64,000 nucleotides of DNA from Mantamonas sphyraenae STR306 (GCA_026936335.1 JAPMXV010000027.1:124001-188000); one strand, 5' to 3'; shown: positions 7,547 through 64,000, numbered from the stretch's first letter. Numbers and translations: made by a program. The notes: generated by a model from the sequence alone, not told the origin.

Positions 7547-7562
7547 TGAAGATCGAAATGGT

Positions 7563-14662: not shown

Positions 14663-14815
14663 CATGCTGTGCAACCTGCACTTCTCCCCCGGCGTTTACG
14701 CCTGCTTCAATGCAAAGCCATCCCTACCCGTGCACCCTTTGCAACTTGACCGTCGTCCACACGCCCCGCAAGTGCCAACACAAACCCCCCGCCGACTCAC
14801 ACATACACAAACACA

Positions 14816-25421: not shown

Positions 25422-25500
25422 TTACAGCATCGGCTGCCGACTTCCAAGGCGTAGCTTTGTCCTTGACAACGATGAGGAGGATGGTTGGCTCCCTCTCACT

Positions 25501-25537
<37 letters not shown>

Positions 25538-28605: not shown

Positions 28606-28645
<40 letters not shown>

Positions 28646-28663
28646 ATACTCACTCGTGGACAT
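27639..28663 (-). CDS. Cytochrome b5, tail-anchored (5 exons)
   Basis: Exons 28663-28654, 28534-28406, 28225-28184, 28051-27960 and 27791-27639 give KHCTEEDVWLVVNNKVYDLTDWYEYHPGGVENIMEYAGNDATEAFKDAGHS plus a C-terminal TM. Confidence 0.93.
28606..28642. repeat. (GT)n microsatellite in cytochrome b5 intron 1
   Basis: Direct reading. Similar tracts at about 21045-21063, 23944-23963 and 27580-27602. Confidence 0.9.
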
Positions 28664-28720
28664 TTCTCACTTGCTGCGTCCGCCTGCGCTGCGCGTCCCG
28701 GCCCACCGAAACCACAGAAA
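28664..28720. promoter_or_regulatory. Putative 57-bp bidirectional promoter between cytochrome b5 and cytochrome c1
   Basis: Divergent ATGs at 28663 (-) and 28721 (+). Confidence 0.55.
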
Positions 28721-30241: not shown

Positions 30242-33200
30242 ATGTCCGCAACGATACGACAACAACGTACGAATGTTGCTTTTGCACTGGTGATTCTCAC
30301 CCTTTGTTTGGGCGTCACACACGCAGCCATCGCTGATTGCTTGGGTACGTGTTCTACTGCTTGCCTCCTCATCACATCCGCTCAGCACACTCACACCCAC
30401 GCCCACCTTACCTTGTTCCTGGCTCCCCTCTTATCCCTCAGCTGGCAACACATACTCTCCACCCTCGTCTTTGAGGGCGTGGATGTGTGGAGCACAAGTC
30501 AAAACAAGTAGCTCAAGCGTGAACGAATTCACTGACCAATCTGGTTATGGCAACCACGCTTCGTCGATTGCCAACAACAGGCGTCCTACGCTCGTTTCCA
30601 ACGTCATCAATGGCCACCCTGCCATCCAGTTTGACGGGGACAAGGACTGTTTGCAGGTTGCAAACACACAAGCCTTCAACACAGACTTCAACCCGTACAC
30701 CGCAAAGACTTGGTTCATGGTCTTCAAGACCGGTTCAGACGTCACCAGCAAGCAGACCCTCTTCAAGCAGGGTGGTGATGTTCGCGGGTTCACCTTTTAC
30801 CTCCAGAGCAGCCGTTTGTACGCCACAGGTTACAACCGCGACAATGGCCAGATCTATTGGTACGTCCCTCTGTCCTTTGGTGCCTGTTCCTCTCAATCTT
30901 TTATCCCCCTTCGTTTGTTCACCTTCCCACTCGCTGTGCTCAACTGCCGCTCACACACAAATTTTCGGATGCCATGCGTCCGGACTACTTTTGCGCGTGT
31001 CCTCAGGGATGTGGCCGTGGCTCTGGATGACCCCAACGCCAACAAAACCAAGTACTTTGGTCTCTACCCCGACTCGTACCACATTTTCGCCTTTCGGTAC
31101 AAGGGAGAAAGTGGGTTTTGTGCCTGTGGAGCCTTCGGCACCCAAAGTAGTTCCGCTCACTCATCACCCACTGCTCCACGCGCTTGACTCACTCTCTCCA
31201 CTCCCCACAATGCCCGTCGCACAGCACCGGGTCAATTCATCGAGACCTGGGTCAACGGCATCAAGATGGTCACAAACACAGCTGTGGAGCGCATGTGGAC
31301 CGATTCGGGTAAGTTTTGCCTCCGGACACTCCAGAAACAAACGCAGAGGGTTCCCAAGCCTTTGTTTGCATCCCCTGCTCACACACAGGCTTCTTCATGC
31401 AGGTAACATCCGCCTTGGCTGTGACGAGACTGGCATGCGGTACCATGACGGTGAGTCTCCACCGTGTTTCCTCTCGCGGACATCCGGAGCTACAGGTTCC
31501 TGATGACCACATCCTATCCTCCTTCCGCCCTCCATGCTCTTTCATCCCACGCAGCCTTGACCGGCGCACTTCCCGCAGCCCACCCACACTGACGCAACCA
31601 ACTCTCGAATCTCCTTCCTTCTCCTCCACAGGGCAATATTCGGACGTGTTCTTTGGCGGCCACATTGCGGAGTTCCTCTACTTCAACAACGAGGCCCTCA
31701 GCGACGCAGATATGGGCGCTGCCTTCACTTTCCTCCAGGCAAAATATGGCGAGATCCTTTTTGATGCCAGTGCTGGTATGTTCCCTTGTCACACCTCCCT
31801 TGACTCCTTTCCCTCCCGTGACTCACACCGGCCCACTCACCCACCCCTTTCCCATTTCTCGCGCAGTCTGCCCCGGATTTTTCACGAACCCTTGCTCCGG
31901 GCCAACTCATGGCGTTTGCAAGACCAACCCGGACAACAGCAAATACTGCGACTGTTTCTCCCCATGGACCGGGGCCGACTGCTCAACCTGTGCGTGATGC
32001 GGGATGCGGGATGCGGGATGCGTGTTGCGTGTTGCCCCTGCCCTTGGCCAACCTCGATTCCCTGCCACTGCTCACACCCCACCGCGTATCCTTTGCCCTC
32101 CACACAGTCGATGGCCCCACCGATTATTGCTACGAGGTGCGCTGGGACCTCGCAAATCCGGCTGGCTACCGCACGCGCAACTTCTTTCCCGTAAAGTACT
32201 TCCCGCCCGGCCACCCGGCCACCAGTCGCTGTGGAGGCATTCCTCCCGACAACCAGGGACGCTACCGAATCCCCACGTACGGCAACCACCCGTCCGACTG
32301 TGCCCCGAACACCGCAGGAGCTGCCATGTTCTACTCCTACGACTACCCCGCACCCACCTCGGAAAACACCGGCCTCAGCACACACGAAGCCGCCACCCTC
32401 ATCATCACTGTCGACGAAACCTTCAACAGTTCCATCATGTGGATCCTTGACAAGAATGACAACGCCGACGGTGGCGAAGTCGACGTTATCGTGGACTCCA
32501 AACGCATCGGTGAGAACGGCGTTCAGGTCGTCCAACAGGATGACCCCACTCCCTACACGAGCAAGTCTTGCCTCAACTCCGGCAACGATTGCTACTTCTG
32601 GAATTCAGCAACTGGGTTTGGCGATTTCCACTTCCGCTGGCTCAAATGCTGTTCCGACGGTGTCGCCATCGGTCCCATGCCACGCTCAGTGGACATCAAC
32701 TTCCGCCTCAGCGTCCTACACGGTATCACCCAGTTTCGCCTCGCAGAGTACGACGGCGAAACCGGCGAAATCACCTTTTTCAACATCCCCGTCTCAGAGG
32801 CTGCCAAGGGCATTCGCATCCTCGATCGCACCTGTGAAGAGTCCACAGAAACATATTGCGGCCAGTACTCATTCTGTGGTGACTGCACTGCCGATCCCCT
32901 CTGTGGCTGGTGCAACGAAGATCTCCGTTGTCTCGGCAAAGACTTTGGCTCCCTCTGCCAAGGCGGACGCTTCCCACTTAGCTTCACAACAGACTGCTGC
33001 ACCGCATGTTCCGACCTTTGCAACTGCGGCGACTGTGTCAAGCGCGCAGGCTGCGGCTGGTGCCACGACACGGGCAAGTGCTATTCTGGTTCCGCCGGCG
33101 CCCCGTGTTCCAACTGCACCTACTTTGCAACAGACACATGCGACACGTGCGGCGGTCCTTTGGACACCCAGGACAACCCGGTCGCCTTTGTGGGCGTCAA

Positions 33201-36200
33201 CAACCTCGGACACGCCTCCTACTGCTCCAAGAACGGCACCTGCGACTTTTCAACAAAGCAGTGCACCTGCCTCGACACAAAGTGGGGAGACGGCTGCCAG
33301 TACGACTGCCCCGCCATCGTCGACGTCGGAGGCGGCGTACTCAAGCCTTGCAACAACGCAGGCAAGTGCAACCAGACAAGCGGTAGCTGCCAGTGCGACT
33401 GTGGCTGGACCGGCCTCTACTGCAACGAGACCGTCCCTGCGGGCTGCGGTATCCAAGGCAGCACCACAAAGGTATGCGTCGTCGGTGACTCCTGCGCACA
33501 AACCTGCGGCAAATGTCTGAACGGTGACGGCCAGTGCAAGAACCCCACAGGCTTCATCCTGCCCAACTCCACTACCTGTGCATGCATCGATGGATGGTAC
33601 GGCGCAGACTGTACATCCCCCTGCCCAGGCATCAGCACAAGCGACGGCTCTGGTTCCATTTGCGGTGGGAACGGAAAGTGTCAGAGCGACGGCTCCTGCG
33701 TTTGCGACTCCTGCTACCAGAACCAGGGCGGAGCAGCAACCATCTGCGAGGCCAAACCCTGCCCCGCATCTTGCACAGCCGCTGTTGGCACCTGCAACTG
33801 CGGCACGTGCTCGTGCGCAGGCAACTGGTACGGCGACGATTGCACACAGTGTGCCTGCCAGAACGGCGCCATTTGCCATAGCATCCACGGCTTCTGCGAG
33901 GATCCGGCAAACGGAAACCCGTGCCCGCCAGGCTATGCAGGCAATCTGTGTCAGTACAACTGTACACGAGACGGCATTTGCAACGGGCACGGCGAGTGCA
34001 ATCCAAGCACCCTCGAGTGCACTTGCGACAAAGGATGGGTCGGCCCCACCTCTGCCCAGTGCTCCAAGCAGTGCAACGAGACTCTCAATTGCTCCTCCCA
34101 TGGACAGTGCCTCGAGGACGCAACCTGCTTCTGCGACTTTGGCTACGTCGGCTCCACCTGCGACACTTCTTGTGTCAAGGACATCAATGACTGCAACTGC
34201 TACCCGCAGATCACCTCCTCGACCATCACTCTCAACGAGGATCCTGTCGCTGACGTCCTCATCGACATGAGCAAGTATGCCTACGACGCCGACTCCGCCA
34301 TCTACTACCAATCCTTGCAGATCTCTTTGCCACCTGTCAACGGTACCATAGTCAGCATCAACCGCATCACCGGTGCCATTTACTACCGCCCAGACGCAAA
34401 CTACTTTGGCAACGACACCATCGCCGTCAAGGTCTGCGATGTCGAGGGTCTCTGTGCAATCGGCGCCATCACCATGAACGTCCTTCCGGTCAACGACCCA
34501 CCCGTTGCTCTCGACGGTAGCATGTTTGCAGAGGCCGACGTCTGGTCCTACGCATCTCTCAACGCCACCGATGTCGAAAACGACGCCCTCACCTTTCGCA
34601 TTGTCACCCAGCCCGCCAAGGGCTCGTTGGAGCTGCTCAGCTCGTCCAATGGCAGCTTTCGCTTCTTTCCCACTCCAGGAGAGAACGGCACCGACTCTTT
34701 TCAGTTCCAGGTGCGTGACAACGGCGATCCCAATCTGGACTCCGTCCTCAACGGAACCGTATTCCTCCTCGTTGCCACACCAAACACTGCGCCGGTTGTC
34801 TACAACGGCACCCTGGACACTGCTGAGGACGTCCCCGGCTTTGGTACACTGACCTTCTCCGACGCAGAGGGTCACCCGGTCACCTTTGAGATCGAGTCTC
34901 AGCCGCATGTCGGCTCCATCACTTTGCTCAACCCCCTCACCGGTGCGTACCGCTACATGCCGCCCATCAACTGGTACGGCACGACCATGTTCTCTTTTTC
35001 TGCGTTTGACATTTTCGGCGACCGCAGCAACGTCTCTTGGATCTCCATCAATGTCACCAGCGTCAACGACCTGCCTCTCTCTTTCAACGAGACCTGGGCC
35101 ACCATGGAAGACGTCGCCTTCTTTGGTCAGCTCAACGCTTCCGACGTGGAGACCTTGCAGGCGAACAGCGCGTTCACCATCACTGTACCCCCGCATTTGG
35201 GCACCATTGCCCTTCAGGCGGCCACGGGCGGGGTGTTTCAGTACACGCCCAACGCAAACGTCTACGGCACCGACTACTTTGCGTACACGGTCACGGACGA
35301 GGCTGGTGGCGTCTCCAACGCCTCCTGGGTCAACGTAACCATCTACGCTGTCAACGACGCGCCCGACTTTGTCGGCCTTCCGTCGCCTGCCACCACCCAG
35401 GAGGACACAGACCTCACGTTTTCAGGCCTGGCTGTCACCGATGTCGATGTAGGAGCCAATGACCAGCTCGTCGTGAACATCTCCATCTCTGAGGGCACCC
35501 TCTCCCTGCAGCGAACGGACAACCTTGTGCTTCTCAGCGGATCCACCGCTGCTTCCAAACAGTTCATTGTGCAGGGCAATCTCACCGTCCTCAATGCAGC
35601 CATCACAGACATGGTGTTTTCACCCACCCCATCTTGGGGTGGCACAACGTACGTCATCCTGTGGGCAAGCGACAACGGCGCCACAGGCAGTGGCGGGGTC
35701 CAGTTTGGCATGCGAAATGTCAGCTTGTCCACACTCACGGTCAACAATGGACCAACCCTCGTCGTTCCATCCGCACAGTCTCAACTCGAGGACACCGACC
35801 TCACCATCGTGGGCATCAGCATGAATGACATCGACGTGGGCGCAGGCAACATGCAGGTCAACATGAGCGTCACCGCAGGTGTGCTCACCCTCGCCCAGAC
35901 CACAGGACTCACGTTCCTCACGGGCGACGGGTCCGCAGACACCCTGCTGCGCTTCCAGGGCACCCTCACGGATTGCAACGCAGCCGTGGCCTCCGTTGTC
36001 TACCGTGCCAACCTGCACTACAACGGCGCAGACTCGCTGCAAATCGACATTGACGATCGTGGGAACACGGGTACAGGTGGTGTCCTCTCTGCATCCAACG
36101 CCGTGGCACTCACCATCACACCCGTCAACGACGCACCCGTGCTCACGCTTGCCTCGCCGCAGGTCACCAACGAAGACACCTCGGTGGCCATTGGAGGCAT

Positions 36201-39200
36201 CAGTGTGAGCGACGTCGACGTCGCCGCAGGAACACTGGCCGCCAACGTCAGCGTGACCAACGGCCTGCTGACCATGAGCAGCCTCGGCGGCTCCATTGTG
36301 CAAGTCCAGGGCAACGCAACCCAGGGCGCAACCGACCTTCGCATCCGTGGCTCGCTCACAGACATCAACGCAGCGCTCGCTTCGCTTGTCTACGCTCCCA
36401 ACGCAGACTACAACGGCGCCGATACCCTCCAGGTGTGGGTCAGCGACCTTGAACTCAGCGACACGGGCTCCGTGGCCATTTCGGTTGTGGCTCTCAACGA
36501 CGGGCCCGTCATCACTTTGCCCGGCACGCCCTCGACCCTCGAGGACACCGCCCTCACCATCACTGGCATCAGCGTCAGCGATGCCGATGTGGCTGCCGGT
36601 CTCATGTGGCTCAACATGACCATGAGCGAGGGCGAAATGGTACTCGGTACCACCCTCGGTCTCACCATGTACGTGGGCACAGGCTTGGGCGGCAACGCTT
36701 TCAACGCCCAGGGCACGCTGACCACTCTCAACTCGGCTCTTGCCCAGGTCATCTACCGTCCCAGCACAAACTTCAACGGTGCCCCGTCGCTGGAGGTGCG
36801 TGTTTCGGATCGCGGCGCCACAGGTGTTGATGGGGAAAAGACGGATGTCAAGACGCTGCCCATCACCGTGCAGGCTGTCAACGACGCCCCCATCCTCTCG
36901 GTGCCTCCTGCACAGACTGTGGACGAGGACGTGGATCTCACGCTGCCTTCGCTCAGTATCGCCGACGTCGACATCGCCGCTGGGCTCGTCAACGTCAACC
37001 TCAGCGTGGCCACGGGTGTACTCAGCCTCGCCAGCACCACGGGCATCTCTGTCCAGGCTGGCAGTGCCACCAGCAGTGCCTTTATCCAGTTTGTCGGCAC
37101 CCTGACCAACGTCAACACTGCCCTCGCGGGTGTGGTGTACCGCGCTGCACAGGACTACGCTGGCTCGGACCAGCTCGACGTGTTCATCAGTGACCTCGGC
37201 AACACCGGGCTTGGAGGCGCACTCAACGACACGGGTTCGGTCGCCATTACGGTGCAGCCCGTCAACGACGCACCAGTCATCACCACCATCACGGACCAGA
37301 CCGTCTCTGAAGACACCGACCTCACCATCTTGGGCATTGGAGTGACCGACATCGACAGCGGCGACGGCACGTTGCGTTTCAACCTCACCGTCCAGTCGGG
37401 AACCATCACCATGCCCAACCCTGCTGGCATCGAGTTTCAGCTCGGGGGACCCTCGGGCTACTCTGCGCTCTCGTTCACAGGCAACGTCACGTCCATCAAC
37501 GCGGCTGTGGGTACTCTGGTCTACCGTTCCTTTGTCAACTTTGACGGCAGCGACACGCTGTCGGTTGCCACTCGAGACTATGGAAACACGGGCTCCGGTC
37601 CTGAGGGCACCCACAGCGTCACCATCGGCATTACCGTCATCGGCGTCAACGATCTCATCGAGTTTTCCAACCCGGCAACAGCCTCTGTTGACGAAGACAC
37701 GGATCTCACTCTTGCTGGCATCAGCGTCAGCGACAGTGACGCCTATGCAAACGCCGTGCGTGTCAACGTCAGCGTGTCGTCTGGCACGGTGACCCTGGCC
37801 CAGACCACGGGCTTGACGCTGCTCAGCGGCTCAGGCTCTGCAGACGCCTTTGTCGAAGTCCTGGGCACGCTGACCAACATCAACGCCGCCCTGAACAACC
37901 TCGTGTACCGTGCAAGCACGCACTACAACGGCCCAGAAACCATCCTGCTGGGTGCAGCCGATCTCGGCGCTACCGGCACGCCTGGGCCAACGAGCTCGTT
38001 CAGCAATGTCTCGGTCACCGTCGCCGCTGTGAACGATGCACCTGTGCTGACCGTTCCCGCGGCCACTCAAACCACCCTGGAGGATGTGGCACTTACAATC
38101 ACTGGTGTCAGCGTAAGCGACGTCGATGTGGCTGCCGCAAATGTCAATGTGACTCTCTCCGTCTCTTCGGGTGTCCTCTCCCTCGGCTCCACAACAGGCC
38201 TGACTTTCGGCTCGGGCGACGGCACCGCAGATCGCTCCATGTCCTTTGAGGGCACGCTCACAAGTGTCAACGCAGCCCTCGCGGCATCGGGCGTCGTGTA
38301 CCTCGGCGATGCAAACTACAACGGGCCCGACGGCCTCTATGTTGAAGTGGACGATGGAGGAGCCACGGGACAGGGTGGCGTGCAACGGAACAGCACCACG
38401 GTGGCCCTGTATGTCGAGGGAGTCAACGACCCGCCTGTGCTCACAAGTATCAGCGCACAAACCGTCGACGAAGACACGGATCTGACCATGTCCGGCTTTG
38501 CCATCACGGATTTGGACGTCGGTTCCCTCCCGCTGCAGGTCAACATCAGCGTAAGCCAGGGTGTGCTCACCGTCGGCTCTCTTGCAGGCCTCACGTTTGT
38601 GCAAGGGGACGGCTCCGCAGACGCACAGATGCGCTTCCAGGGTTCGCTTACCGCCGTCACGGCCGCTCTCAACGGCCTCGTGTACCGCGGCAACCTGCAC
38701 TTCAACGGCGCAGACACCCTCAGCGTGGGTGTGGATGACCGTGGCAACGTGGGTCTTGGTGGCTTCCTCACAGATGCTGCCACGGTGGCCATCACCGTGG
38801 AGGCCGTCAACGACGCGCCTGTGCTCACCGTGCCTGGTTTGCAGGCAGCCACTGAGGATGTGCAGCACACCATCAGTGGCGTGAGCGTGTCCGATGTCGA
38901 CGTCGCTGCAGGCCTGATGAGTGTCAACCTCACAGTCACGGCAGGCACCCTGTGGCTTCCCACAACCACCTCGCTCACCTTTGCTCTTGGCGACGGCACC
39001 AACGACCGCCGCATGGAGATGACGGGCACGCGCACCGCACTGAACACAGCCCTGGCCGCCATTGTGTACCAAGGCGACCTTCACTGGAACCAGGGTGACA
39101 CGGTCACCGTGGACGTGCACGACTACGCGCAGACAGGCAAGGGAGGCCAGCTTGCCGACACAGCAACCATTCCCATCAACTTTGTGGCTGTCAACGATGC

Positions 39201-42200
39201 GCCTGTACTCACGGTGCCACCTGCTCAAGCGGGTTCGGAAGATGTCGACCTCCCCATCACGGGCATCAACATCACCGATGTCGACGTGGCAGGAGGCCAG
39301 CTGCGTGTCCAGATCGGCGTCACATCCGGTGTGTTGACCCTGGCCACCACGGTCGGGCTCAACTTTGCCTCCGGAGGTGGCTTTGCGGACGCAAGCATGG
39401 ACTTCCAAGGCACGCTGACCCAGGTCAACAACGCTTTGGCCACAGTCACCTATCTCACCGACCTGCACTACAACGGCAACGATGCCGTTTCCATTGCCGT
39501 GTACGATCAGGGCAACACAGGTGTGGGTGGCGTCCTGCAGGACTCGGGCAACATCCCGCTCACGCTTCAGGCCGTCAACGACGCACCTACCTTTGGTGTG
39601 CCTGGTACGCAGAATGTGGACGAGGACACAGATCTCACCATTTACTTGGTGGGATTCATCGTTTCCGACGTGGATCTGTTCGGCGCAGATGTGCAGGTCA
39701 ACCTTTCGTGTGCCTCGTGTCTGATGAACCTGACCACCACCACGGGCCTGGAATTCGTGGTCGGCGATGGCTTCCTCGACCCGTTCATGTCCTTTACCGG
39801 CACTCGCACAGAGGTGAACAACGCCATCACAACCGTCGTTTACCGTGGCGAACCCAACTTCAACGGTTTCGACGCCGTGACGGCGGTCGTATCCGATCGT
39901 GGCTTCACCGGTTTTGGCGGTGAACAGTTTTCCACCGACCAAACTGCAATCGTTGTGAACCCGGTGAACGACGAGGTCATCATCACCATTCCGTCGGCCC
40001 TGTTTGTGTCCGAGGACATTGCGTACAGCATCGACAGCGTCAGCATCACCGACGTGGACATCGGGTCCGGCATCATGTCGGCCAACTTGTCTGTGAGCCA
40101 CGGTTTGTTGCAGCTCGCATCCACCGAAGGCCTGACCTTTGCAGAGGGCAGTGCCGCACCCGGGCGTGTTTTCCGCTTGGATGGCAACGTGACCAACATT
40201 GCCAAGGCGCTTCTGAACATGACCTACACGAGCGACCTGCACTACCACGGCACAGACTACCTCTACATCGAGGCGACGGACAACGAGATTGGCAACGCCA
40301 CGTTTACATGGAAGTACCTGGCCATCAACGTGGAGTCAGTCAACGATGCGCCTGTGCTCAGCGTGCCTGGCGCACAGGCGGTGAGCGAAGACGTGGCCAT
40401 CACCCTCAATGGGATCAACGTCACCGATGTGGACGTGGATGCAGCCACCATGTTCTTCAACATCACGGCTGACCATGGTGTCATGTCCCTGGCCACCACC
40501 ACGGGCTTTGCCATGACGTTTGGAGACGGAACAGCCGACACGGCCATGCGCTTCACAAGCACTTTGACCAGTTTCAACACGGCTATGGCCGGTGGGCTCG
40601 TGTACCAGGGCAACCTGCACTTCAACGGCATCGAGACAATCCACATCACAGCCAGCGACCAGGGCAACACAGGCGTCACCGGAGGTGTGCAGCAGGATCT
40701 GCGCACCATTGTCATCAACGTGACTGCCGTCAATGACGCTCCCGTGTGGACGGTGCCTTCTGCACAGACTGTGGACGAGGATGTCACCTTGAACATCACA
40801 GGCATCTCGTTGAGTGATGTCGATGTCGAGGCTCTCCCCATGGAGGTTAGCCTGCGCGTGTCCAACGGCACCTACAACCTTGCCTCCACAGCAGGCCTGA
40901 CCTTTACGACGGGCACAGGCGCAAACGACCGGGAAACCGTGCTGCGTGGCTCTCTGACCGACATCAACGCCGCCCTGGTGTGGTTGACCTACACCGGCGA
41001 CTTTGAGTTCTCCGGTTTGGACACTCTCCAGCTCAGTGTCAACGATCTTGGCCACGTCGGCGACGTCGGGCCGCTCTCCGACGCTGCCTCGGTGCCCATC
41101 AATGTCGTGATCATCAACGACGCCCCACAGCTCTCCGTGAGCAGCTCCCAATCCGTTAGTGAAGACACAGACGTCACGATTGCAGGCATGAGCGTGACCG
41201 ATGTGGATGTGTTTGACCAGTCCATGCGTCTCAACGTGTCGGCTTCCAACGGTGTCGTCACTTTTGTCACCACCACAGGACTGTCGTTCCTGTCCGGCAC
41301 CAGCAACGGCGCATCGCTGCTCAACGTGCGCGGCACAGTGACTCAGATCAACGCAGCCCTGGGCACGGTCGTCTACCGTGGCAACCTGCATTGGTACGGC
41401 CAAGACCAGCTGCAGATTGCCGTCGACGATGAGGGCAACACAGGAAACGGGGGCGTCCAGAGCGCCTCTGGCGTCGTCAACGTCACTGTTACGGCTGTCA
41501 ACGACGCGCCTGTGCTCCAGGCAGTCAGCGATCAGACGGTGAACGAAGACACAGATCTGACCATTGCTGGTATTGGTGTGAGCGACGTGGATGTGTACGC
41601 CGTGCCACTTGAGGTCAACGTCAGCGTGTCGCAGGGAGTGCTCTCGCTGCCCAACACGGCCGGTTTGACATTCTTGGTTGGCGACGGCCAAGACGATGCC
41701 TTTATGCGCATTCGCGCCACCGTGACCAACATGCACGCTGCCCTGTCACCTATTGTGTACCGTGCGGCCCAGGATTACAACGGAGCAGACACGCTGCAGG
41801 TCAGCGCCAGCGATTTGGGCGAGTCTGGCTTTGGTGGCGAGCTGCGTGATGCCTTTACAGTGGGCATCACCGTGCAGGCCGTCAACGATGTGCCCATCTT
41901 TGGCATCATCACTGACCAGGCCGTCAACGAGGACACAGACTTGACCATGCTGGGCATCACCGTCACCGACGTCGATGTCTTTGCTGGTGCTCTTACCGTC
42001 AACGTGAGCGTCGGCCACGGAGTGCTCACCCTCCCCAACACGGCTGGTCTCACGTTTAGCCGCGGCGACGGTACGCAGGACCCTGTGCTCACTTTCACGG
42101 CGGACGTGACCACGGCCACCGCGCGTCTGGGCACCATTGTGTACCGCGGTGATGTCAACTACAACGGCGCCGACGCGCTGGTGCTGTATGTCAACGACAA

Positions 42201-45200
42201 CGGTGCCACTGGTCTGGGCGGACCTCTGTCGTCCACGCAGACCATCAACCTGAACGTCGTCCCGGTCAACGACGCGCCCGTACTGACTGTGCCCGTGGGC
42301 TCGATCACCTCTGAGGATGTGATCGGTTTCTTCAACGGCATGAGCGTCAGCGACGTGGACGTTGCGAATGCGATTGTCAGCGTCAACATCACTGCAACGC
42401 TGGGCCTGGTGATGACCGGTGGCACGACCACGGGACTCACGTACACCGTAGGCAACGGCGCCTCATTCTTCCCCGAGCTGCGCTTCTACGGCACCCTGAC
42501 CCAAATCAACGCTGGCATCTCCACCATGCGCTACCTGCCGCTGGCCGACCGCAACGGCGACGACTTTGTGCAGGTGAGCGTGTCTGATGGCGGTGCCACG
42601 GGTCTGGGAGGCGCACTGTTCGACCAGGCCGTGTGGGTGGTCAACGTCACTGCCGTGAACGACGCACCCGTGTGGTCTCTGCCTACAGGTGGCACACCCG
42701 TTGTCCTCGAGGAGAACGACTTGATCATCACGGGCGTCGACGTGAACGACGTCGATGTCAAAGACCGTGTCATGGCGTTCAACATCAGCAGCGGCATTGG
42801 TCTCATTACGCTGAATAGCACTGCAGGGTTGACGTTTGAGAGCGGAGACGGCGTGGCAGACGCGTACATGCGCTTCTACAGCACCCTGACGGCTGCTCGC
42901 AACGCAGTGCAGCAGCTTGTGTACCGCTCGCAACCGAACCTGCACGGAAACGACGTGCTTGTGTTCACTGCCGACGACCAGGGAGCACTGGGCGCAGGCG
43001 GTGCGCTGATCCACAATGTCACGTACAATGTGTTTGTGACATCCGTGAATGACGCCCCGGAGGTGATCCTGCCCAGCCAGGGTACGGTGGCCGAAGAAGC
43101 GGATCTCAGCATTGCCGGTGTCAGCCTGACTGATGTCGACGTGGGTGCCTCTACGTTGTATGTCAACATGAGTGTGGGAAGCGGTGTGTTGTCGCTGGCG
43201 ACCACCACAGGTCTCACCTTTACGCTGAACTTGGGTGTGCCCATCGGCGACGGCGTCCAGGACCGAGTGATGGACTTTTCGGGCACCCTGACTGCCATCA
43301 ACGCAGCCCTGGCCACAGTTGTGTACACGGGAAACCAGCACTACTTTGGCACCGACTTTTTGTACATCGGTGTGCGTGACGGCGGAGCCAGCGGCGCAGG
43401 AGGCGAATTGAGCGGGAGCAACACCATGACCATTACCGTCGTGGGTGTCAACGATGCTCCTGTGGTCATTGCCCCAAGTACGGCCACGGCAACCGAGGAT
43501 GTCGACCTGGTCGTTGCAGGTGTGGCCGTGAGCGATGTCGATGTGGCCAACAACCTGCTTGGCGTCAATTTGACAGTGACTGCAGGCACGTTGACCCTGA
43601 GTGGCACCTCGGGCCTCACCTTTGTGCAAGGCGACGGCACGGCCGACGCAGACATGATCCTGCGCGGCACAATCACCGACGTCAATGCTGCACTGAACAA
43701 TTTGGTGTACCGCACAAACCTGCACAGCGTGGCTGCCGACACCCTGTCCATCGGCGTCGAAGACTTTGGCTCGTTTGGCACGGGTGGCCCGCTGAGCGGA
43801 AGCGGAAGTGTTGCGATCGCCGTGACGGCGGTCAACGACGCACCGTACTTCACTGTGCCCAGCGCACAGTCTGTCAACGAAGACACCGACTTGACCCTCG
43901 TGGGAGTCAGCGTGTCTGATGTCGATGTGAACGCAGCCACACTGAACGTCAACATGAGCGTGAGTCTTGGTCAGCTGTGGCTGAGCACAACCGCAGGTCT
44001 GACCTTTTCCACGGGCTCCGGCTCTGCAGACGCCAGCATACATGGCACTGGCAGCGTTACATCGTGGCAGAATGCACTGACCAACATGGTGTACCGCGGC
44101 AACGCGCATGTGTATGGCACCGACACGCTGCATCTCGGAGTGCGCGACAATGCAGCCAGCGGCGTGGGCGGCGAACTCAGCGGCGCGTCGGCACTTACCA
44201 TCACCGTAGTGTCGATCAACGATGCGCCTGTGGTGAGCACACCAGGGACAGCCTCTGTGATGGAGGACATCCCTGCTGCCATCAGCGGTGTGTCTGTGAG
44301 CGACGTGGACGTGTACGCCGCTCCGTTGCTGGTCAACGTGAGCACCTCGCATGGATTGATCACCTTGGCGACCACCGAGGGTCTGACCATGCTGCAGGGC
44401 GACGGTACGCAGGACGCCACAGTCCGTTTCAACGCAGCCAACCTGACGCGTGTCAACAACGCTCTGGCCGGCTTGGTGTACGTGAACCAGCCTGACTACA
44501 ATGGAGGAGACATCATGACCATCACCGTGGAGGATCTGGGCCAGAGCGGAGTGGGCGGCAGCCTAGTCGGCGTGTGGCACCGTGACAATCACCGTCCAAG
44601 CGGCCAACGACGCGCCTGTTGTCAGCGGCCCCACATGGGCAGCTGTCAATGAGGACACCGACTTGACCATCTCTGGATTCAGTGTCACCGATGTGGACGC
44701 TGCAGGTGACAATCTGTGGCTGAACATCTCTGCGGGCGCCGGTGCGGTGTCCCTCCCTGTCACTGCCGGCCTGTCCTTCCGTGTGGGTGACGGTGCTGCA
44801 GACAGCTACATGGAAGCACAGGGCACGCTGACGGCCATCAACGCAGCCCTTGCGACCGTGGTGTACCGTGCAAACAGCAACTACGACGGCTCCGACAAGT
44901 TGCAGGTTCTGGTGGACGACCAAGGCCACAACGGCCTGGGCGGAGCCAAGTTTGGCAACAGAAGCACCCTTGTGCAGATGACAGCCATCAACGATGCGCC
45001 CTACCTGCCGGTCCTGGCCACAAAGGTGACCAACGAAGACACAAACCTGACCATCAGTGATCTGGCCATTTCCGACGTGGACATCCGCAGCAACGCCATC
45101 ACCGTCAACATGACCGTGATGTACGGTCGCATCAGTTTGGCCAGCACAGCGGGCATCACGTTTACGCTTGGCTCGGGCAGCGGTGACCGCTTGGTTCAGT

Positions 45201-48200
45201 TCCAGGGCACTCTCACGGACGCCAACACGGCTCTGAACGGCATGATTTACACGCCAGACACCAACTTTTACGGCAGCGACACTCTGTTGGCGTGGGCGAG
45301 CGACAGTGGATTCGTGGGTTCCGGCGGTGAGCTCCTGGGCAACTCGAGCATTCCCATCACGGTCACAAGCCTGAACGATGCCCCAGAGGTGGATGCACCG
45401 GCCTCGTTGTCCGCCTCAGAAGACATCGAGTACACCATGACCAGCGTCTCTGTCACTGACGTCGACGTTGCGTCCAGCCCGCTGAGCGTAACCATGGGCG
45501 TCACGCAGGGTGTCCTCACGCTGAACGGCACGGCTGGCCTCACATTTACGCTGGGCGATGGCTCTGCCGATGCGACCATGCGATTTTCGGGTACGCTGAC
45601 AAACGTCAACGCAGCTCTCCAGGGCGCAGTATATGCGTCGACCCCCGAGTGGAATGGCGTCGACACGCTCAATCTGCAGGTGAATGACCAAGGCGCAACT
45701 GGCGCTGGTGGAGCACAGTCGGCTACCGTGAACATTCCCATCAACGTGGCCTCCATCAACGATGGCCCGGCCATCGACATTGGCGCAAACCAAACGATTG
45801 CCGAGGACACAGCAGCCACCATCACTGGATACACAGTATCCGACTCTGATCTTGGGCACAAAGTCCATGTACATTCGTCTGTCCACGACGAATGGTGTGA
45901 TCACGCTGAAGCAAACCACTGGTCTCGTGTTTGACACCGGCAGTGACGGCACACGCGATGCCACGCAGATTTTCACCGGTTCTCTCACCAATGTGCGCAA
46001 TGCAATTTCGCAAATTGTGTATGAACCCAACGCAGACTACTATGGCGTGGACGCAATCCGCGGAGAGACCAACGATTTCGGCTTCACCGGTGCAGGAGGT
46101 GCCCAGGGCGATCTCAAGTACCTGTATGTGACGGTGACCCCTGTGAACGACCCGCCCAGTTGGAACGTCCCACCACACGCACGCTCGATGAGGACACCGA
46201 ATTGACTGTGGGTGGCGGCGTGATCAACATTGCGGATGTCGACGGAAGCGGCGGAGACATTGAGACTCGTGTCACCGTCGATCAAGGACGCGTGGCGTTG
46301 GCCAACACCAATGGTTTGACATTTACCACGGGAACGGGTGCGTATGACACACAGATGATTTTTACGGGCACGTTGGACGCGACAAACCAAGGTCTGTACT
46401 TTTTCATCTACCGTCCGGATCAGGACTTTGCTGGCACCGCTACGGTGACGCTGTGGACGGATGACCGTGGAAATGTGGGCACCGGCCCGTCGTACCAACG
46501 CCAGACAACGCTGCAGTTTGTGGTGAATCCGCTCAATGACGAACCGCGTCTGCTCAACCCCATTGTGGGCACACAGACAGTGAGTGAGGACACCGACCTC
46601 ACCCTCACAGGCATTGGAGTCACAGACAACGACGTCACGACCCAGATGGTGGAGATCTCCTTGTCCGCTTCGTACGGTACGCTGACGCTGCCCACGACCA
46701 CTGGCTTTGTCTTTGGCGTGGGTGACGGTATCGCAGACGCCACGATGAAGTTTAACACGACCATGGCCAACTTCAACAGCAGCATGAGTGGCTCTGGCAT
46801 CGTGTACCGCGGCAACGCTCACTATTTTGGAAGCGATGTGATTTCACTCAATGTCAGCGACAATGGTATCAGCGGACTGCCTGGTGCCCGTACGGACAGC
46901 TCAACTATTGTTGTTTCTGTGGTCAGTATCAATGACGCTCCTTTGGTCACCGTGCCTGCAGCACAGGCTGTGAACGAAGACACGGATCTGACACTGAGCG
47001 CCGCCACGGCCATTTCGGTGAGCGACGTCGACGTGGGCGGCGCCAACGTGTACATGGAGCTCAATGTGACGCAAGGTGCCATCACATTCGTGAGTACCAC
47101 TGGAATCACTTTTGACAATGCATGCACAGGCACTGCCTGCGCCGTGGCCAAGCTGCACGCAGACCTGACTGCCCTCAACGCAGCCCTGGCGACCATTGTG
47201 TACCGCCCGGGAAGCCACTACAACGGTGCGGATACGCTGGGCGTGTATGCACACGACAACGGCGTGCAGGGTACTGGCGGCCAGCTTCAAGACTACAAGA
47301 CCGTGGCACTTACCGTCAACGCAGTCAACGACGCGCCGACCATCACTGCACCTGGATTGCAGGTGGTCACTGAAGACGAAAAGCGCTCACTGACCGGCCT
47401 CATTTCTGTTTCCGACGTGGACGTATTTGCAAACAACCTGCGCCTGAACCTGAGTGTGGCCAACGGCCAGCTGAGCCTCGACTCTGCTGTCGCCGGCTTG
47501 ACTGTGGTCCAAGGCAACGTGTCTGCAGATACCGACTTGCGTCTGCTTGGTACACTCACTGTGCTGAACAACGCCCTCAATGTGCTTTCGTACACACCGG
47601 GCCTGAATTTTGAGGGTGTCGACCAGCTGTCCATGGTAATCGACGACAACGGCTACACCGGCAGCGGAGGAGTGCTATCCACCTCTGTTCAAATGGCGCT
47701 TGGAGTCAATGGTGCAAACGATGCTCCGGTGGTCAATCTGCCTGCCACGCAGAGTGTGGCTGAGGACGTGGATCTGACCATCAGCGGCATCTCCATTGCC
47801 GACTCGGACATCGGTGCAAACCAAGGCCGCGTCCGATTGAACGTCAGCCATGGCGTACTCACCGTGGTTTCTACCTCGGGTCTGTCGTTCAACCTCGGTG
47901 ATGGATCTGCAGACACGGAAATGCAGTTCACCGGGACCATCACGCAGCTCAACCTGGCGCTGAGCTCAGTGATTTACCGCAACAACATCGACTACAACGG
48001 CGATGACACCATTCTCGTGGAGGCCAATGACCTGGGCAACACCGGCGTGGGTGGAGCCCTCACAGCTTCCCGCACGCTCACCGTCCAGGTGACGCCTGTG
48101 AACGACCGCCCTGCCATCACACCTGTGGGTGGAGTGAACGTGGACGAGGACACGGATCTGACGATCGTAGGTGTGCAAGTGACCGATATCGACGTCCTTG

Positions 48201-51200
48201 ACGGATCGATGGAGATGAACTTGACGGTGACGCATGGTGTGCTGACGAGCGTGAACGCAGGCGGCGTGACGTTTGTGTCTGGCACGAGCAACGGAGGACG
48301 CAGTCTGGTGCTGAACGGCACGGTGACGGCGCTGAACGCGGCCATCGGGCAGGTGGTGTACCACGGCGACCTGCACTTCTTTGGCAGCGACTCGCTCGAA
48401 CTGAGCGTGCGCGACAAGGGCAACACGGGAGCCGGCGGTGAGCAGACAGACAGCCAGAGTGTGGCGATCACTGTGAATGGTGTGAACGACGCGCTGGTGA
48501 TCACTCTGCCGAGTGCACAGAGTGTGGCTGAGGACACGGATCTGACGATTGGTGGCATCAGCGTGAGCGATGTGGACGTGGCCGGATTTGCGTTCCGAGT
48601 GAACGTGAGTGTGAGCGCAGGCAGCCTGTGGCTGGGCAGCACGACGGGTCTGACGTTTGGCAGTGGCGACGGAGTGAACGACACGTGGATTGTGTTTGAC
48701 GGGTCGATCACGGCTGTGAACGCAGCACTGTCGAACATGGTGTACCGTGGAGTGACACAGTACAACGGAGCAGACGGGCTTGTTGTGTGGGTGTCTGACC
48801 AGGGAGCAGTCGGCAGCGGTGGTGAGCAGGTGTCGAACAAGACACTTGTGATCAACGTGGTGGCTGTGAACGACGCACCTGTGCTGAGTGTGCCTGGGGC
48901 ACAGAGCACGGCCGAGGACACTGCGCTGACAGTGAGCGGCGTGAGTGTGGCGGACGTGGACGTTGCGGGCGGAGCGATGAACGTGAACGTGAGTGTGAGT
49001 GCTGGCCGAGTGTGGCTGGCGAGCACGAACGGCCTTGTGTTCAGTGCAGGCAACGGCAGCAGCGACGGACGGGTGGAGTTCAGCGGCAGCGTGACGGATG
49101 TGAACAACGCGCTGGCGACAGTTGTGTACATGCCGGACAGTGCGTTCAACGGAGTGGACAGCATTGTGGTGAGCGTGAACGACGGTGGCAACACGGGCAG
49201 TGGCGGAGTGCTTGGAGACAGTGGCAGCATTGTTGTGACTGTGTCGAGCGTGAACGACGCGCCTGTGCTGAGTGTGCCGAGTGGACAGAGCGGCGTTGAG
49301 GACACGGATCTGACGATTGGTGGCATCAGCGTGAGCGATGTGGATGCCGCAGCTGGACTTGTGGGCGTCAAGGTGGCCGCTGCACAGGGTACAGTGAGTC
49401 TGGGATCGCTGTCTGGAGTTGTGTTCAACGCTGGAGACGGCGTGCGTGACGCATTCATCGATTTCAACGCCACGTTGACAAACGCCAACGCCGCGCTTAA
49501 CAACCTGGTGTATCTGGGAAGCCAGCATCTTGTGGGTGACGACGTGATCGCCATCAACGTGACCGATTACGGAAACAGTGGCGTTGGAGGTGCACTGAGC
49601 GACAGCGCAAGCTTCGTCGTCACCCTCAGCGCAGTCAACGACGCACCAACCGTCATTTTGCCCAGCTCCCCGTCGGGCAACGAGGATTCAAACATTGCTG
49701 TCGCCGGCATCAGCGTGAGCGATGTGGATGTGGCAGACAACCTCCTGGCGGTCAACCTGACTGCCGGTTCAGGCACCCTCAGTCTTGTCACTTTCGACGG
49801 CATCTCGCTTACTGGAGCCAGCACCGGTACAAATGACGCCGTTCTTGCCTTTGCGGGCAACATCACTTCGGTGAACAACGCTCTGGCGAACATCCTGTAC
49901 CGTGGGGACGCCAACTTTAATGGCGTCGACCAAATTGTGGTTGGCGTGGAAGACGGTGGCGCTGTTGGCACAGGTGGCTCTCTCTACGCACAGGCATCGT
50001 TGGCCATCACCGTCAACGGAGTCAACGATGCCCCGACACTGCAGGTGCCTGCGACGCAAAGTGTCCTCGAGGGCACGACCGTCACCATGGCCGGACTGAC
50101 GTTGTCGGACATCGACGCCGCCAGTGGAACCATGGAATTGCAGCTGCAGGTGACGAGTGGTCTTCTCACGCTGAATGGTGCCACGACTGGACTGACTTTT
50201 GTCACGGGCGGGCCGTCTCTGAATGCTCTCATGGTTTTCCGAGGCACGCTCTCTCAGCTGAACACGTCGGTGAGCAGTCTGGTGTACGAGCCTGCGCAGT
50301 ATTTCAATGGTCAGGACACCGTCAGCGTCTTGTTGTCGGACCTCGGCTTCACGGGCATTGGCGGCACTCTGTCCACGCAAGGGTCGTTCAACATCACTGT
50401 GACCCCGTACAACAACGCACCGACCATCGCTGTGCCCGGGGCGCAGAGCACCGAAGAGGACACCCTTGTCAACATCGTGGGTGTCAGCGTCTCCGATATT
50501 GATGCAGGTGCCACTCCGGTCAGTGTCAACGCTAGCGCCGCAAACGGTGTCATTGTGCTCGCCTCTACAACAGGCATCACATTCACCACGGGCGACAACT
50601 CAGGAGTTGCACTCATGCGATTCACCGGCACGTTGACGGATGTGAACACGGCTCTTGCCACTCTGGCGTACACTCCCAACAACAACTACTTTGGTACAGA
50701 CACCATCTCTGTGGGCGTGAACGACAACGGAGGCACAGGTGAAGGCGGGCCGGCAAGCTCTGCCAGCTCGTTCACCGTGCTCGTCAATGCAGTCAACGAC
50801 AACATGAACATAACGGTTCTGGGTGCACAAACAGTCAACGAAGACACTGATCTGACTCTGTTTGGCATCACCCTGACGGACCAGGACGTGGGCACGAACG
50901 AGATCCTGGTCAATTTGACCACGAACATCGGCACCCTTACTTTGTCCAACACAACCGGGTTGACGTTTCTATCTCGGCAACGGGACGGCAGACTCCAACA
51001 TGCAGCTCTTGGGCTCGCTGGCCATCATCAACGACGCCCTGCACGGAGCCGTGTACCGCAGTTTGCTCAACCAGAACGGCGCAGACACACTGGACATTTG
51101 GGTGTCCGACCGTGGCTTTGGCAGCGCGAATGGCACTGTGACCATCAGCCAGAAAGCGCAGATCATCAACGTGGCCCCGGTGAACGACGCACCTGTGCTC

Positions 51201-54200
51201 ACACCCAGCCCTGCCTCGGTTTCCGTCGATGAAGACAGTCAGCTTACCCTGTCTGGCATTTCCGTCGCAGACGTCGACGTGGCCGCGTCCTCTCTTTTCT
51301 TCAACTTCACTGTGTCCAGGGGCTCACTTTCGCTGGGAAGTACGACCGGTTTGTTGTTCACCCTTGGCGCCGGATCAGGTGACAAGGCCATGCACTTCAC
51401 CGCCACCACAACCCAGTTTGCAAGTGCCATCGCCGCAGCTGGCCTCGTGTACCAACCGGACCCGAACTACAATGGAGTGGATGTCCTCCACCTCCTCGTG
51501 TCCGACCAGGGCGCAACAGGCTCCGGTGGCGCTCTCACGGATACCGCTACAACCGTTATCACAGTCAATGCGGTCAACGACGGACCGACCGTCGTCGTGC
51601 CGAGCTCCCAGAGCGCTGTGGAGGATGTTCAGTTGACCATTGCTGGCATTTCAGTGTCGGACATTGATGCAGGCGCATCGCTGGTGACCGTCAACGCGAG
51701 TGTCTCCAACGGACAGATCTGGCTTCGAAACACGACTTCCTTGATCTTTGCGCTTGGCAGCGGATCTGCAGATGTGGATGTGCGCTTCCGTGGTACGCTC
51801 ACCGCCGTCAACGAGGCCTTGAGTAGCGTGGTCTACCTGGCACAGTCTCACTACAACGGAGCGGACACCCTCGTGATCAACGTCGATGACAACGGCAACA
51901 GTGGCTCCGGTGGGTTGCTTACAGCATCCGCCTCCGTTCCGCTTTCCGTCGCTGCAGTCAACGACGCCCCGGTGTTGACGGTGCCTGCTGCCCAGAGCAC
52001 GAATGAGGACGCAGCGCCCCTGGTGATCTCGGGTATCAGCGTCACCGACGTGGATGCGGGAGCAAACGCGATGCAGTTCAACATGTCCGTGTCCAGCGGC
52101 ACCATCACGATTCCTACAACCGCAGGGCTCACCTTCGTTGTCGGTGACGGTGTCAACGACCGATTTGTCTCGTTTACGACCTCAATGACCAACTTCAACA
52201 CCAGCATGACCACGGGAGGCGTCGCGTACTCGGGCGACCTGAACTTTGAGGGAACGGACACCTTGCTTGTAGTCGTCAGCGATCTCGGCAACACCGGCGG
52301 CGTCGCTCTGACAAACACAGGCTCTGTCACCATCACGGTCAATGCTGTGAACGACGCCCCACTCATTACTGTGCCTGGCGCCCAGGTGGTAAACGAAGAG
52401 TCCGACCTGCTGGTGTCAGGCATCAGCGTTGCAGACGTCGATGTGGCAACCGGCTCCATGTCCTTCAACGCCAGCGTGTCCAACGGTATCATCCGCCTCG
52501 GGTCATCGGTGCCCTCTCTGACCTCGATCAGTGGCAACAACTCTGCGTCGTTGTCGTTCACCGGCTCGCTCACGGCGCTGAACAACGCCCTGGCCACGCT
52601 TGTGTATCGTGGCAGTGTGAACTTCCAGGGCGTGGACACGCTGCTCTTGGGTGTGCGAGACAACGGCAACACGGGAAGCGGCGGTGAGCTCAGTCACGCT
52701 GCCTCTGTTTCTATCACCGTGGCGGAAGTTAATGACCCGCCCGTTCTCACAGCACCCTCGAGTGCAACTGCCAACGAAGATGTTGACGTGACCATTGGTG
52801 GTGTGTCTGTTGCAGACCCGGATGTCGGTGGTGGCCTCATGTCCTTCAACATCAGCGTGAGCAATGGCGTGCTCACGCTGCCGAACCGAAACAGTGGTGA
52901 AGTTTTCGTTGTTGGCGACGGCGTTCAAGATGGAACCATCCACCTGCTGGGCAACGTGACCACAATCAACGCGGTGTCCAGCGCCATTGTCTACCGCGCC
53001 AATGAGAACTACAACGGACCGGATACCCTCAGCGTGTTTGTCAGCGATCGTGGACACTCCGGCTCTGGTGGAGCTCTTTCGGATTCCGCGAACGTGGCGA
53101 TCACGGTTGTGGCCGTGAACGACGGCCCTGTGCTGAGTGTTGTGTCTGCACAGAGTGTGGCTGAGGACGTGGATCTGACGATCAACGGCATCAGCGTGAC
53201 GGACGTGGACGTTGCAGGCAACGCATTCCAGGCGAACGTGAGCGTGAGCCAGGGTGTGGTGACCGCAGTGACGACGACGGGCCTGACATTCAGTGTTGGC
53301 GACGGTGCGTCGGACGCGACGATGAGCTTCACGGGCACGCTGACCCAGGTGCAGACTGCACTGGGTGTGCTGGTGTACCGCGGGGCACAGGATTACAACG
53401 GCGCAGACACGCTTGTGGTGCGCGTGAGTGACCTGGGCAACGTGGGTGTGGGTGGAGAGTTGACAGACAGCGGCAGCGTGGGCATCACGGTGACGCAGGT
53501 GAACGACCGCCCTGCCATCACACCTGTGGGTGGAGTGAACGTGGACGAGGACACGGATCTGACGATTGCAGGCATCACTGTGACGGACATTGACGTGGGC
53601 GGAGAGTCCATGGAGATGAACTTGACGGTGACGCATGGTGTGCTGACAAGCGTGAACGCAGGTGGCGTGACGTTTGTGTCTGGCACGAGCAACGGAGGAC
53701 GCAGTCTGGTGCTGAACGGCACGGTGACGGCCCTGAACGCGGCCATTGGGCAAGTGGTGTACCACGGCGACCTGCACTTCTTTGGCAGCGACTCGCTCGA
53801 ACTGAGCGTGCGCGACAAGGGCAACACGGGAGCCGGCGGTGAGCAGACAGACAGCCAGAGTGTGGCGATCACTGTGAATGGTGTGAACGATGCGCTGGTG
53901 ATCACTCTGCCGAGTGCACAGAGTGTGGCTGAGGACACGGATCTGACGATTGGCGGCATCAGCGTGAGCGATGTGGACGTGGCCGGATTTGCGTTCCGAG
54001 TGAACGTGAGTGTGAGCGCAGGCAGCCTGTGGCTGGGCAGCACGACGGGTCTGACGTTTGGCAGTGGCGACGGAGTGAACGACACGTGGATTGTGTTTGA
54101 CGGGTCGATCACGGCTGTGAACGCAGCACTGTCGAACATGGTGTACCGTGGAGTGACACAGTACAACGGAGCAGACGGGCTTGTTGTGTGGGTGTCTGAC

Positions 54201-63200: not shown

Positions 63201-64000
63201 TCGGTGGTATCAGCGTGGCAGATGTGGACGCAGCAGCCGGTGTGGTTGCCGTGAACGTGAGTGTGACGTCTGGTCAGATGTGGCTGGGCAGCACGAGTGG
63301 CCTTGTGTTTGGTGCTGGCAACGGCAGCAGCGACGCAACGGTGCGTTTCACGGGCACGTTGACCAACGTGAACGCAGCGCTGACGAACCTGGTGTATCGT
63401 GGCAACGTGAACTTCCAGGGCACGGACAGCGTGGTGTTGAGTGTGAACGATCTGGGCAACACGGGCGCGGGTGGAGCGCTGGGTGACAGTGCCGTGATTG
63501 TGGTGACTGTGGCCGAAGTGAACGACGCGCCTGTGCTGACGGCACCGGCCACTGTGAGTGTGAACGAAGACACGAGCAGTGCCATTGGCGGTCTGAGCGT
63601 GGTCGATGGCGACGTTGGCAGCGCGCGCATGCAACTGCGTCTGAGTGTGTCACAGGGTGTGTTGAGCCTGGGTAGCACAAGCGGACTGTTGTTTGCTGTT
63701 GGTGACGGCGTGTCTGACAGCACGATTGAGTGCAACGGCACGGTGACGGATGTGAACGCGGCTTTGGGCAGCGTGACGTACGTGGCAAACAGCAACTACA
63801 ACGGAGCGGATACGCTGGCTGTGTTTGTGGACGACCTCGGCAACAGTGGTCTGGGAGGAGCACTGAACGACACGGCGAACGTGGCGATCACAGTTGTGGC
63901 TGTGAACGACGGCCCTGTGCTGAGTGTTGTGTCTGCACAGAGTGTTGCTGAGGACGTGGATCTGACGATCAACGGCATCAGCGTGACGGACGTGGACGTT
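30242..64000 (+). CDS. Giant secreted/surface protein (>~10,900 aa, runs off window): SP-LamG-EGF-unknown-2xPSI-EGF array-~78 cadherin/Ig-like repeats
   Basis: Exons 30242-30344, 30442-30859, 31007-31110, 31225-31308, 31403-31450, 31632-31775, 31867-31989 and 32108->64000 join in phase. Five single-base shifts (~44575, 45855, 46170, 50974, 54368) split the track ORFs. No stop is seen from 54370 to the end. Confidence 0.9.
30442..31775 (+). other. Laminin-G / concanavalin-A-like domain of giant protein
   Basis: FTDQSGYGNHA, PAIQFDGDKDCL, ETWVNG and FFGGHIAEFLYFNNEALSDADM..FLQAKYG. Confidence 0.8.
32830..34200 (+). other. Cys-rich region: two PSI domains and ~8-9 EGF-like repeats
   Basis: CGQYSFCGDCTADPLCGWC, CGDCVKRAGCGWCHDTGKC, CNGHGECNPSTLECTCDKGWVG and CSSHGQCLEDATCFCDFGYVGSTC. 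Confidence 0.88.
34210..64000 (+). repeat. Array of cadherin-like repeats: 4 short (~95-100 aa) then ~74 of ~128 aa (~384 bp)
   Basis: Recurring VNDAPVL...V.EDTDL.I.GISVSDVD...VNVSV..G.L.L..TTGLTF..GDG..D....F.GTLT..NAAL...VYRG...YNG.DTL...V.D.GNTG.GG. Confidence 0.95.
47714..64000 (+). repeat. Higher-order (7- and 14-domain) super-repeats with near-identical DNA blocks
   Basis: Block starting NDRPAITPVGG at about 48098, 53499, 56207 and 58895. The identical antisense ORFs are offset by 2688 bp (7x384; 56101 vs 58789) and 5391 bp (57883 vs 63274). Confidence 0.93.

Follow-up and report, generated by a model that had tools for sequence, protein, structure and literature searches.

The 64,000-nucleotide stretch of DNA analyzed here (hereafter the window), which spans positions 124001-188000 of contig C27 in the assembly of Mantamonas sphyraenae STR306 (GCA_026936335.1), contains the 5′ part of a real, spliced and expressed gene that probably encodes a giant plasma-membrane adhesin or tether of about 19,000-27,000 amino acids (aa), for which a mechanism is proposed below. 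M. sphyraenae is a gliding flagellate of the CRuMs group, 3-5 micrometres in size, from the skin of a barracuda, and its genome was assembled with FALCON from a xenic culture and PacBio reads with an N50 of 11 kb (PMC10492846). The assembly comprises 25,061,354 bp in 78 contigs, the longest of which, C29 (751,365 bp), carries a close paralogue of the gene. A first-pass annotation of the window had described a surface protein with a eukaryotic head on a bacterial-type cadherin-like stalk, and this architecture holds. Positions are counted within the window unless a contig is named, and all features of the giant gene lie on the plus strand.

Starting at position 30,242, seven short exons with GT-AG introns lead through a stop-free frame into a giant exon that begins at 32,108. 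All seven introns of the head region are spliced out as joints in contigs of sequencing run X3, and none of the seven in the DNA runs X1 and X2; run X3, which had been labeled 'DNA?', thus behaves as RNA, and the exon model announced by the first-pass annotation is confirmed. The head-stalk join near 34.2 kb, at which a chimeric contig might have been suspected, lies inside single contigs of each run (33222-34367 in X1 and X2, 33945-34367 in X3), which removes the chimera objection. The depth of the DNA-run contigs rises to about twice that of single-copy sequence at 35062-35348 and to about three times at 35847-36042, consistent with sequence common to C29 and possibly with a third near-identical copy. 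A bacterial stalk or a chimeric join could be suspected on the grounds that the best matches to the stalk are bacterial and that the culture is xenic. Such contamination is refuted by the contigs that bridge the join in both DNA runs and in the RNA run, by four paralogues that carry the same head-stalk junction region, by the GC content at third codon positions (0.71-0.75, similar to that of the neighboring genes), and by a genomic setting of telomere-bearing contigs beside intron-containing eukaryotic genes; its residual probability is negligible.

The head was characterized by database searches run exon by exon, and the joined spliced translation was compared locally with the retrieved sequences. 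Exon 1 (30242..30344, its junction spliced in X3) carries the start codon and a hydrophobic, signal-peptide-like segment (aa 12-30), in line with the signal peptide noted at first pass. Exons 2-6 (30442..31775; individually 30442-30859, 31007-31110, 31225-31308, 31403-31450, and 31632-31775), which are supported by splicing, encode a probable LamG/concanavalin-A-like domain (aa 35-300): exon 2 is 34% identical over 73 aa to a cyanobacterial Laminin_G_3 domain (pairwise E 3e-13), and it returned no LamG match in a direct Pfam scan. A weak Pfam match of the same exon to Toxin_R_bind_N (E 0.024) was attributed to the common ConA fold, and a toxin domain was rejected. Exon 7 (31867..31989) encodes one teneurin-type EGF module (Pfam DUF7949/EGF_Teneurin), so that, of the LamG and EGF modules attributed earlier to the spliced exons, the second stands on Pfam and the first on the indirect Laminin_G_3 match.

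The giant exon opens with an unnamed all-beta domain of about 250 aa (32108..32860), here called X, which bears a conserved W..CC.DG motif and had been omitted from the earlier domain list. It is followed by two PSI modules (32857..33150; two stretches matching Pfam PSI) and by a Cys-rich EGF array with 56 Cys in 350 aa (33151..34200; Pfam EGF_2/EGF_Teneurin/EGF_TEN). A query made of X and PSI retrieved 267 homologues, among them integrin-beta-like proteins of Variosea, EGF-rich proteins of choanoflagellates, and a protein of Fabomonas. The all-beta nature of X is predicted by AlphaFold2 with a mean predicted local distance difference test score (pLDDT) of 88 from a 70-row alignment, a single-sequence AlphaFold prediction of the head having given 34. 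Structure searches returned no close solved fold for X, the best being adhesin Ig-like domains with Z scores of 5.5 or less, and comparison of the model with the Atlas gave template-modeling scores of 0.63-0.66 to uncharacterized bacterial and eukaryotic domains, including domains of bacterial surface proteins; assignments of X as a NIDO or a galactose-binding domain were unsupported by the fold searches. No Pfam match to Integrin_beta or VWA occurs within the first 1,400 aa of the giant exon, and the sole DxSxS motif lies inside the EGF array.

The stalk begins with four tandem-95 (cadherin-like/Big_9) repeats of about 95 aa (34201..35346; NCBIfam tand_rpt_95, 152.9 bits, four stretches) and continues with about 46 mostly diverged cadherin-like repeats of about 128 aa (35347..53111), in which NDxP, xED, DxD, GxD, and D motifs are conserved and an N-glycosylation sequon recurs at a conserved position. 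From 53112 to 64000 it consists of a homogenized array of 7-domain (2,688 bp) and 14-domain super-repeats that extends for another 37.5 kb beyond the window, as far as the end of C27. The short units match NF012211 at 152.9 bits against a cut-off of 90, whereas the long units alone reach 81.6 bits, below that cut-off; matches to Cadherin_4 (PF17803) score 125-147 bits against a cut-off of 25.1, and Big_9 is also present. Three segments of 1,400 aa searched at E 0.01 gave no match to the canonical cadherin family PF00028, and no solved structure of the 128-aa repeat was found. Of 62 units, 85-97% retain the N-D-x-P, E-D, D-x-D, and G-x-D motifs and a further D downstream, a set that parallels the Ca2+-binding motifs of cadherins. 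An N-x-S/T sequon occupies position 40 of the unit in 21 of the 24 unique units, versus 17 of 689 other units, a pattern that suggests a single ancestral unit adapted to passage through the secretory pathway; each unit holds about two sequons, an overall density not above that of shuffled sequences or bacterial units, so that the positional sequon alone is informative. Copies of the super-repeats are about 99% identical from about 53 kb onward, and it is proposed that the stalk grew by unequal crossing-over and was homogenized between two paralogous loci by gene conversion. Identity between the C27 and C29 paralogues rises from about 79% in the head through 98% (36-38 kb) to 99.9% (42-46 kb), and their upstream flanks are unrelated; this gradient points either to gene conversion between the loci or to cross-polishing by the assembler.

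The giant exon had been described as a single exon of more than 31.8 kb without an end in the window. It does lack introns and continues past the window, but it is not an uninterrupted open reading frame in the assembly, where five 1-nt indels shift the frame and a literal reading in frame 0 reaches a stop at 44,652. The frame changes lie at about 44,575, 45,854, 46,169, 50,966, and 54,369, and introns at these places are ruled out since the changes are 1-nt indels. Insertions at 44575, 45854, and 50966 and a deletion at 46169 are absent from the C29 copy, which is 98-99.9% identical over 36-54 kb and has two other indels of its own, while the base deleted at 54369 is present in four other copies within C27 and in the C29 copy; on this comparison all five are very probably assembly errors. 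Were one or more of them real, the C27 copy would be truncated or decaying, with a secreted product of about 4,500 aa and an array reduced to non-coding residue, a view to which the five breaks, and the many others that follow beyond the window, lend some weight. That C29 lacks the first four indels and has two different ones makes such decay improbable, as do the position of all five in short homopolymer or dinucleotide runs, the lack of premature in-frame stops between them, and the rise in the frequency of breaks toward contig ends that is expected of poor consensus in multi-copy DNA. With the frames corrected, the part of the protein encoded in the window amounts to about 10,970 aa and includes four tandem-95 units and about 74 units of about 128 aa, in agreement with the more than 10,900 aa, the PSI and EGF modules, and the roughly 78 repeats reported at first pass.

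Beyond the window, the array extends to the end of C27 (225,532), giving 23,483 aa and about 170 long units at face value. Contigs C27, C28, C29, and C32 each have a telomere at base 1 and their other end inside the repeat array. On its minus strand, C32 leaves the array for further units, five unnamed repeats of about 120 aa, a transmembrane (TM) helix, and a 60-aa loop, followed by a two-helix hydrophobic segment and a Pro/acid-rich tail of about 540 aa. The tail region of C28 is 91-99% identical to that of C32; the C28 stop was placed by offset from C32, and the C28 tail, like the paralogue on C61 and most of that on C44, is known through search matches. A variant 14-mer block common to C27 and C28 favors C27-C28 and C29-C32 as pairs, and the C28 tail probably belongs to the C27 gene. 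Of the TM or glycosylphosphatidylinositol anchor anticipated downstream, a TM anchor was found on another contig, in the tail read on C32, C27 itself ending in the array. The tail repeat belongs to no Pfam family; the Atlas clusters that it resembles are unnamed and mainly eukaryotic. Pfam Ig_SibA matches the membrane-proximal unit at 22 bits in C32 and 30 bits in C44 (cut-off 27), and the cytoplasmic tails of C32 and C44 contain neither an NPxY/F motif nor an RTX Pfam match. The gene that follows the C32 tail (L012:2156-1, minus strand) is presumably DEPDC5/IML1-like.

In-register joins yield 23,465 or 27,059 aa for the C27 gene, a floor near 19,000 aa results if the six consecutive 7-mers are counted as one, and the C29-C32 pair has a minimum of about 18,100 aa; the full protein is therefore likely to have about 19,000-27,000 aa and about 130-190 stalk repeats. 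It is possible, if on the whole doubtful, that the array of C27 was partly inflated during assembly by looping through the reads of both loci and that the protein of this real gene is near 18,000-19,000 aa, for C27 runs about 45 kb into the array, versus about 10-16 kb for C29, C32, and C28, the PacBio N50 is 11 kb, and C29 and C32 can overlap in register. The super-repeat copies of C27 differ, however, in their patterns of single-nucleotide polymorphisms and include two distinct 14-mer variants, and reads would probably have crossed a short array from end to end. The question concerns length only, and a shorter protein would be compatible with the tether mechanism.

The genome contains at least four members of the family, besides other stalk-bearing genes. 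On C44, one open frame of 9,721 aa holds the X domain, stalk, tail repeats, TM segments, and an EF-hand tail, so that the architecture from the giant-exon head to the tail does not depend on a contig join alone. This paralogue (L013:3-6083) ends in a cytoplasmic EF-hand pair, which the C32 tail lacks, and the longest M. sphyraenae transcript contig (32.28 kb; PMC10492846, Table 1) is near the size expected for it. On C61, head and tail matches lie about 17 kb apart on one strand (C61:75838-58417, minus); LamG, X, and the first stalk units of this shorter paralogue share one open frame of 3,601 aa, whose head may accordingly be intron-poor. Open frames of up to 6,185 aa with the cadherin-like repeat, the tail repeat, or both occur on C4, C13, C56, C39, C74, and C1 without a match to the X head, indicating that the two repeats are reused in other genes.

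In the mechanism proposed, the stalk would end in some five unnamed repeats of Ig-like type, followed by roughly three TM helices and a Pro/acid-rich cytoplasmic tail of about 540 aa, probably that on C28. Ca2+ from seawater would bind the acidic inter-domain motifs and stiffen some 130-190 domains into a semi-rigid, N-glycosylated rod, an inference made sound by the conservation of these motifs. In MpAFP, Ca2+ rigidifies tandem Ig-like repeats, and about 120 domains of 4.5 nm each give a length of about 0.6 micrometre (PMC4083281); at the same spacing, the Mantamonas rod would measure about 0.6-0.9 micrometre. The LamG/X head would thereby be held off the 3-5 micrometre cell to bind the surfaces of bacteria or the substrate as the cell glides and feeds, and the tail would couple to the cortex without a talin-binding NPxY motif. 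The main functional rival is that the same protein serves as a structural or protective cell coat (a glycocalyx, a spacer, or a shield against predators or viruses), possibly cleaved and shed. The two or so sequons per unit, the presence in the genome of four or more genes of this family and of further genes with the stalk, and a head without an assigned ligand would all suit a coat. Such a role is nonetheless rather unlikely: the distal tip carries a multi-domain head that is conserved and has counterparts in integrin-beta-like receptors, the multi-TM anchor with its long tail is conserved as well, and both favor a receptor or tether.

Several points weigh against the tether as favored here. 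Its ligand, localization, and Ca2+ binding are all predicted, and its function is deduced from them; the RNA support was examined as far as 36.1 kb, and the RNA contigs of the head have a low depth (about 2-6). The identity of the LamG domain rests on a bacterial Laminin_G_3 match rather than on Pfam, the indels are probably errors on the comparison of copies rather than of reads, and no read spans the array, so that the head-tail join and the length are likewise deduced.

The origin of the stalk is less clear. Its best database matches, at 41-47% identity over 900 aa, are uncharacterized giant proteins of bacteria, whose genes adjoin SecA-DEAD/HlyD/M50 or TolC-type export genes. At the level of single units, the best identity is 36-57% to bacterial units, 42-61% among Mantamonas units, and 28-37% to the units of the single EukProt protein found; the length filter of the search hides full-length eukaryotic giants. 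In a 132-column tree, 26 of the 27 Mantamonas units cluster together; their monophyly is compatible with the data (approximately unbiased test, p-AU 0.87), but a joint clade of Mantamonas and EukProt units is not rejected (p-AU 0.70), and the free tree search missed better trees. The horizontal acquisition suggested at first pass consequently remains plausible and unproven, the balance being perhaps even. Scanning GTDB brought up a single alphaproteobacterial locus and named no donor. The sole outside unit that groups with Mantamonas, P0017, was set aside as uninformative, as it comes from an adapter-ended, probably chimeric contig. In the metagenomic contig L019 (ENA ERZ505514), one or both ends are Illumina adapter, and a DUF2867 start is fused with repeats that have the Mantamonas-type sequon and cluster with Mantamonas units; the contig is probably chimeric. 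A search with the head among proteins of 2,300-7,300 aa gave only an unrelated EGF-rich match, a result that, with this length filter, is no proof of absence. A bolder scenario, offered as speculation and unlikely as it stands, is that a bacterial extender was acquired horizontally, inserted into an old protist receptor chassis, given a glycosylation site, and amplified to at least 27,000 aa as a micrometre tether for gliding and for catching bacteria.

Comparison with known systems suggests a protein that works like a bacterial extender adhesin, with a head shared with Variosea type II integrin-beta-like proteins (1,405-3,641 aa; Kang et al., bioRxiv 10.1101/2020.04.29.069435). The latter, represented by Soliformovum P0265 and metagenomic P0264, likewise have a LamG-type N-terminus, EGF, X, and PSI domains, Big_9/Cadherin_4/Ig_SibA repeats after PSI, and a membrane anchor. 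Unlike them, the Mantamonas protein has no vWD domain and, after PSI, an EGF array instead of a beta-I/VWA domain; its paralogous tails on C32 and C44 lack the NPxY/F of P0264 and P0265; it would have about three TM segments and a long tail, where theirs is short and preceded by a single TM; and it is about 10 times longer, with a 128-aa repeat in hundreds-scale arrays. Sib proteins, reported in dictyostelids only, combine a VWA domain, a single TM with GxxxG, and two NPxY motifs that bind talin (PMC9197732), none of which was found in the Mantamonas protein, the tails read being those of C32 and C44. Like Dictyostelium SibA-E, the Mantamonas protein would be a eukaryotic membrane adhesion receptor; the membrane-proximal unit of its family scores against Ig_SibA on either side of the cut-off, below it in C32 and above it in C44. 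SibA also has bacterial-like repeats. The combination of a eukaryotic head with bacterial-type cadherin-like repeats is hence already known from Variosea type II and Sib proteins, and the label of an undescribed system given at first pass was overstated.

With bacterial giant repeat adhesins (MpAFP/MpIBP; tandem-95/VCBS/Cadherin_4), the protein shares a long tandem beta-sandwich extender, acidic linkers, and a distal head, MpAFP being likened by analogy only, as its repeat belongs to a different 104-aa family. In contrast to these adhesins, it has a probable Sec signal peptide, introns, a Cys-rich EGF/PSI head, an N-glycan sequon, and a probable TM anchor, and its orientation is reversed, with the tip N-terminal, the anchor C-terminal, and no RTX secretion signal seen. 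An uncharacterized 4,790-aa protein of the ancyromonad Fabomonas tropica (EP00163 P012695/6) resembles it in its signal peptide, X domain, Cys/Trp TM motif, and Pro-rich tail and contains the membrane-proximal repeat in eight copies; it is much shorter, its X domain is internal, and its filler is another beta-rich repeat without cadherin-like units, which suggests an older chassis with exchangeable stalks. Likeness to titin, PKZILLA-1 (45,212 aa, about 25% larger than titin), and Drosophila Dumpy (about 23,000 aa) lies in size class only, without homology; titin has a similar super-repeat organization, and titin and PKZILLA are intracellular, unlike the Mantamonas protein. Judged by its domain content, the protein is not a member of the integrin-beta, Sib, RTX adhesin, or metazoan cadherin families.

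The giant gene lies at the downstream end of a series of unremarkable neighbors. Its ATG lies 178 bp downstream of an intron-containing cytochrome c1 gene (28270-30064, plus strand), whose last exon matches PF02167 (E 3e-51). Other neighbors in the window are an amino-acid permease (3-1556), an F-box protein (4985-7603, minus), a cytochrome P450 (9522-11171, minus), a SET/Rubisco-LSMT-type plus ankyrin protein (11824-14835), an AAA ATPase (17075-19819, minus), and an arrestin-like protein (25422-27095, minus).

In the literature searched, no paper links Mantamonas with cadherins, none was found on surface adhesion molecules of this kind in gliding CRuMs flagellates, and the scale, the super-repeats, the homogenized twin loci, the multi-TM anchor, and the two unnamed domain families are undescribed. 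The array explains four contig breaks in the assembly and shows that genes of this sort can be hidden by long-read errors. A titin-class membrane-anchored protein is surprising for a cell of 3-5 micrometres with a 25 Mb genome, in which the two giant loci alone occupy at least about 110 kb of coding DNA; the protein would rank among the largest eukaryotic cell-surface proteins and, were the bolder scenario true, would perhaps be the largest. The X family ties CRuMs to the heads of integrin-beta-like receptors and is spread over choanoflagellates, amoebozoans, and ancyromonads, and the genes described here provide named candidates for surface adhesion in the gliding flagellates of CRuMs, the sister group of Amorphea.

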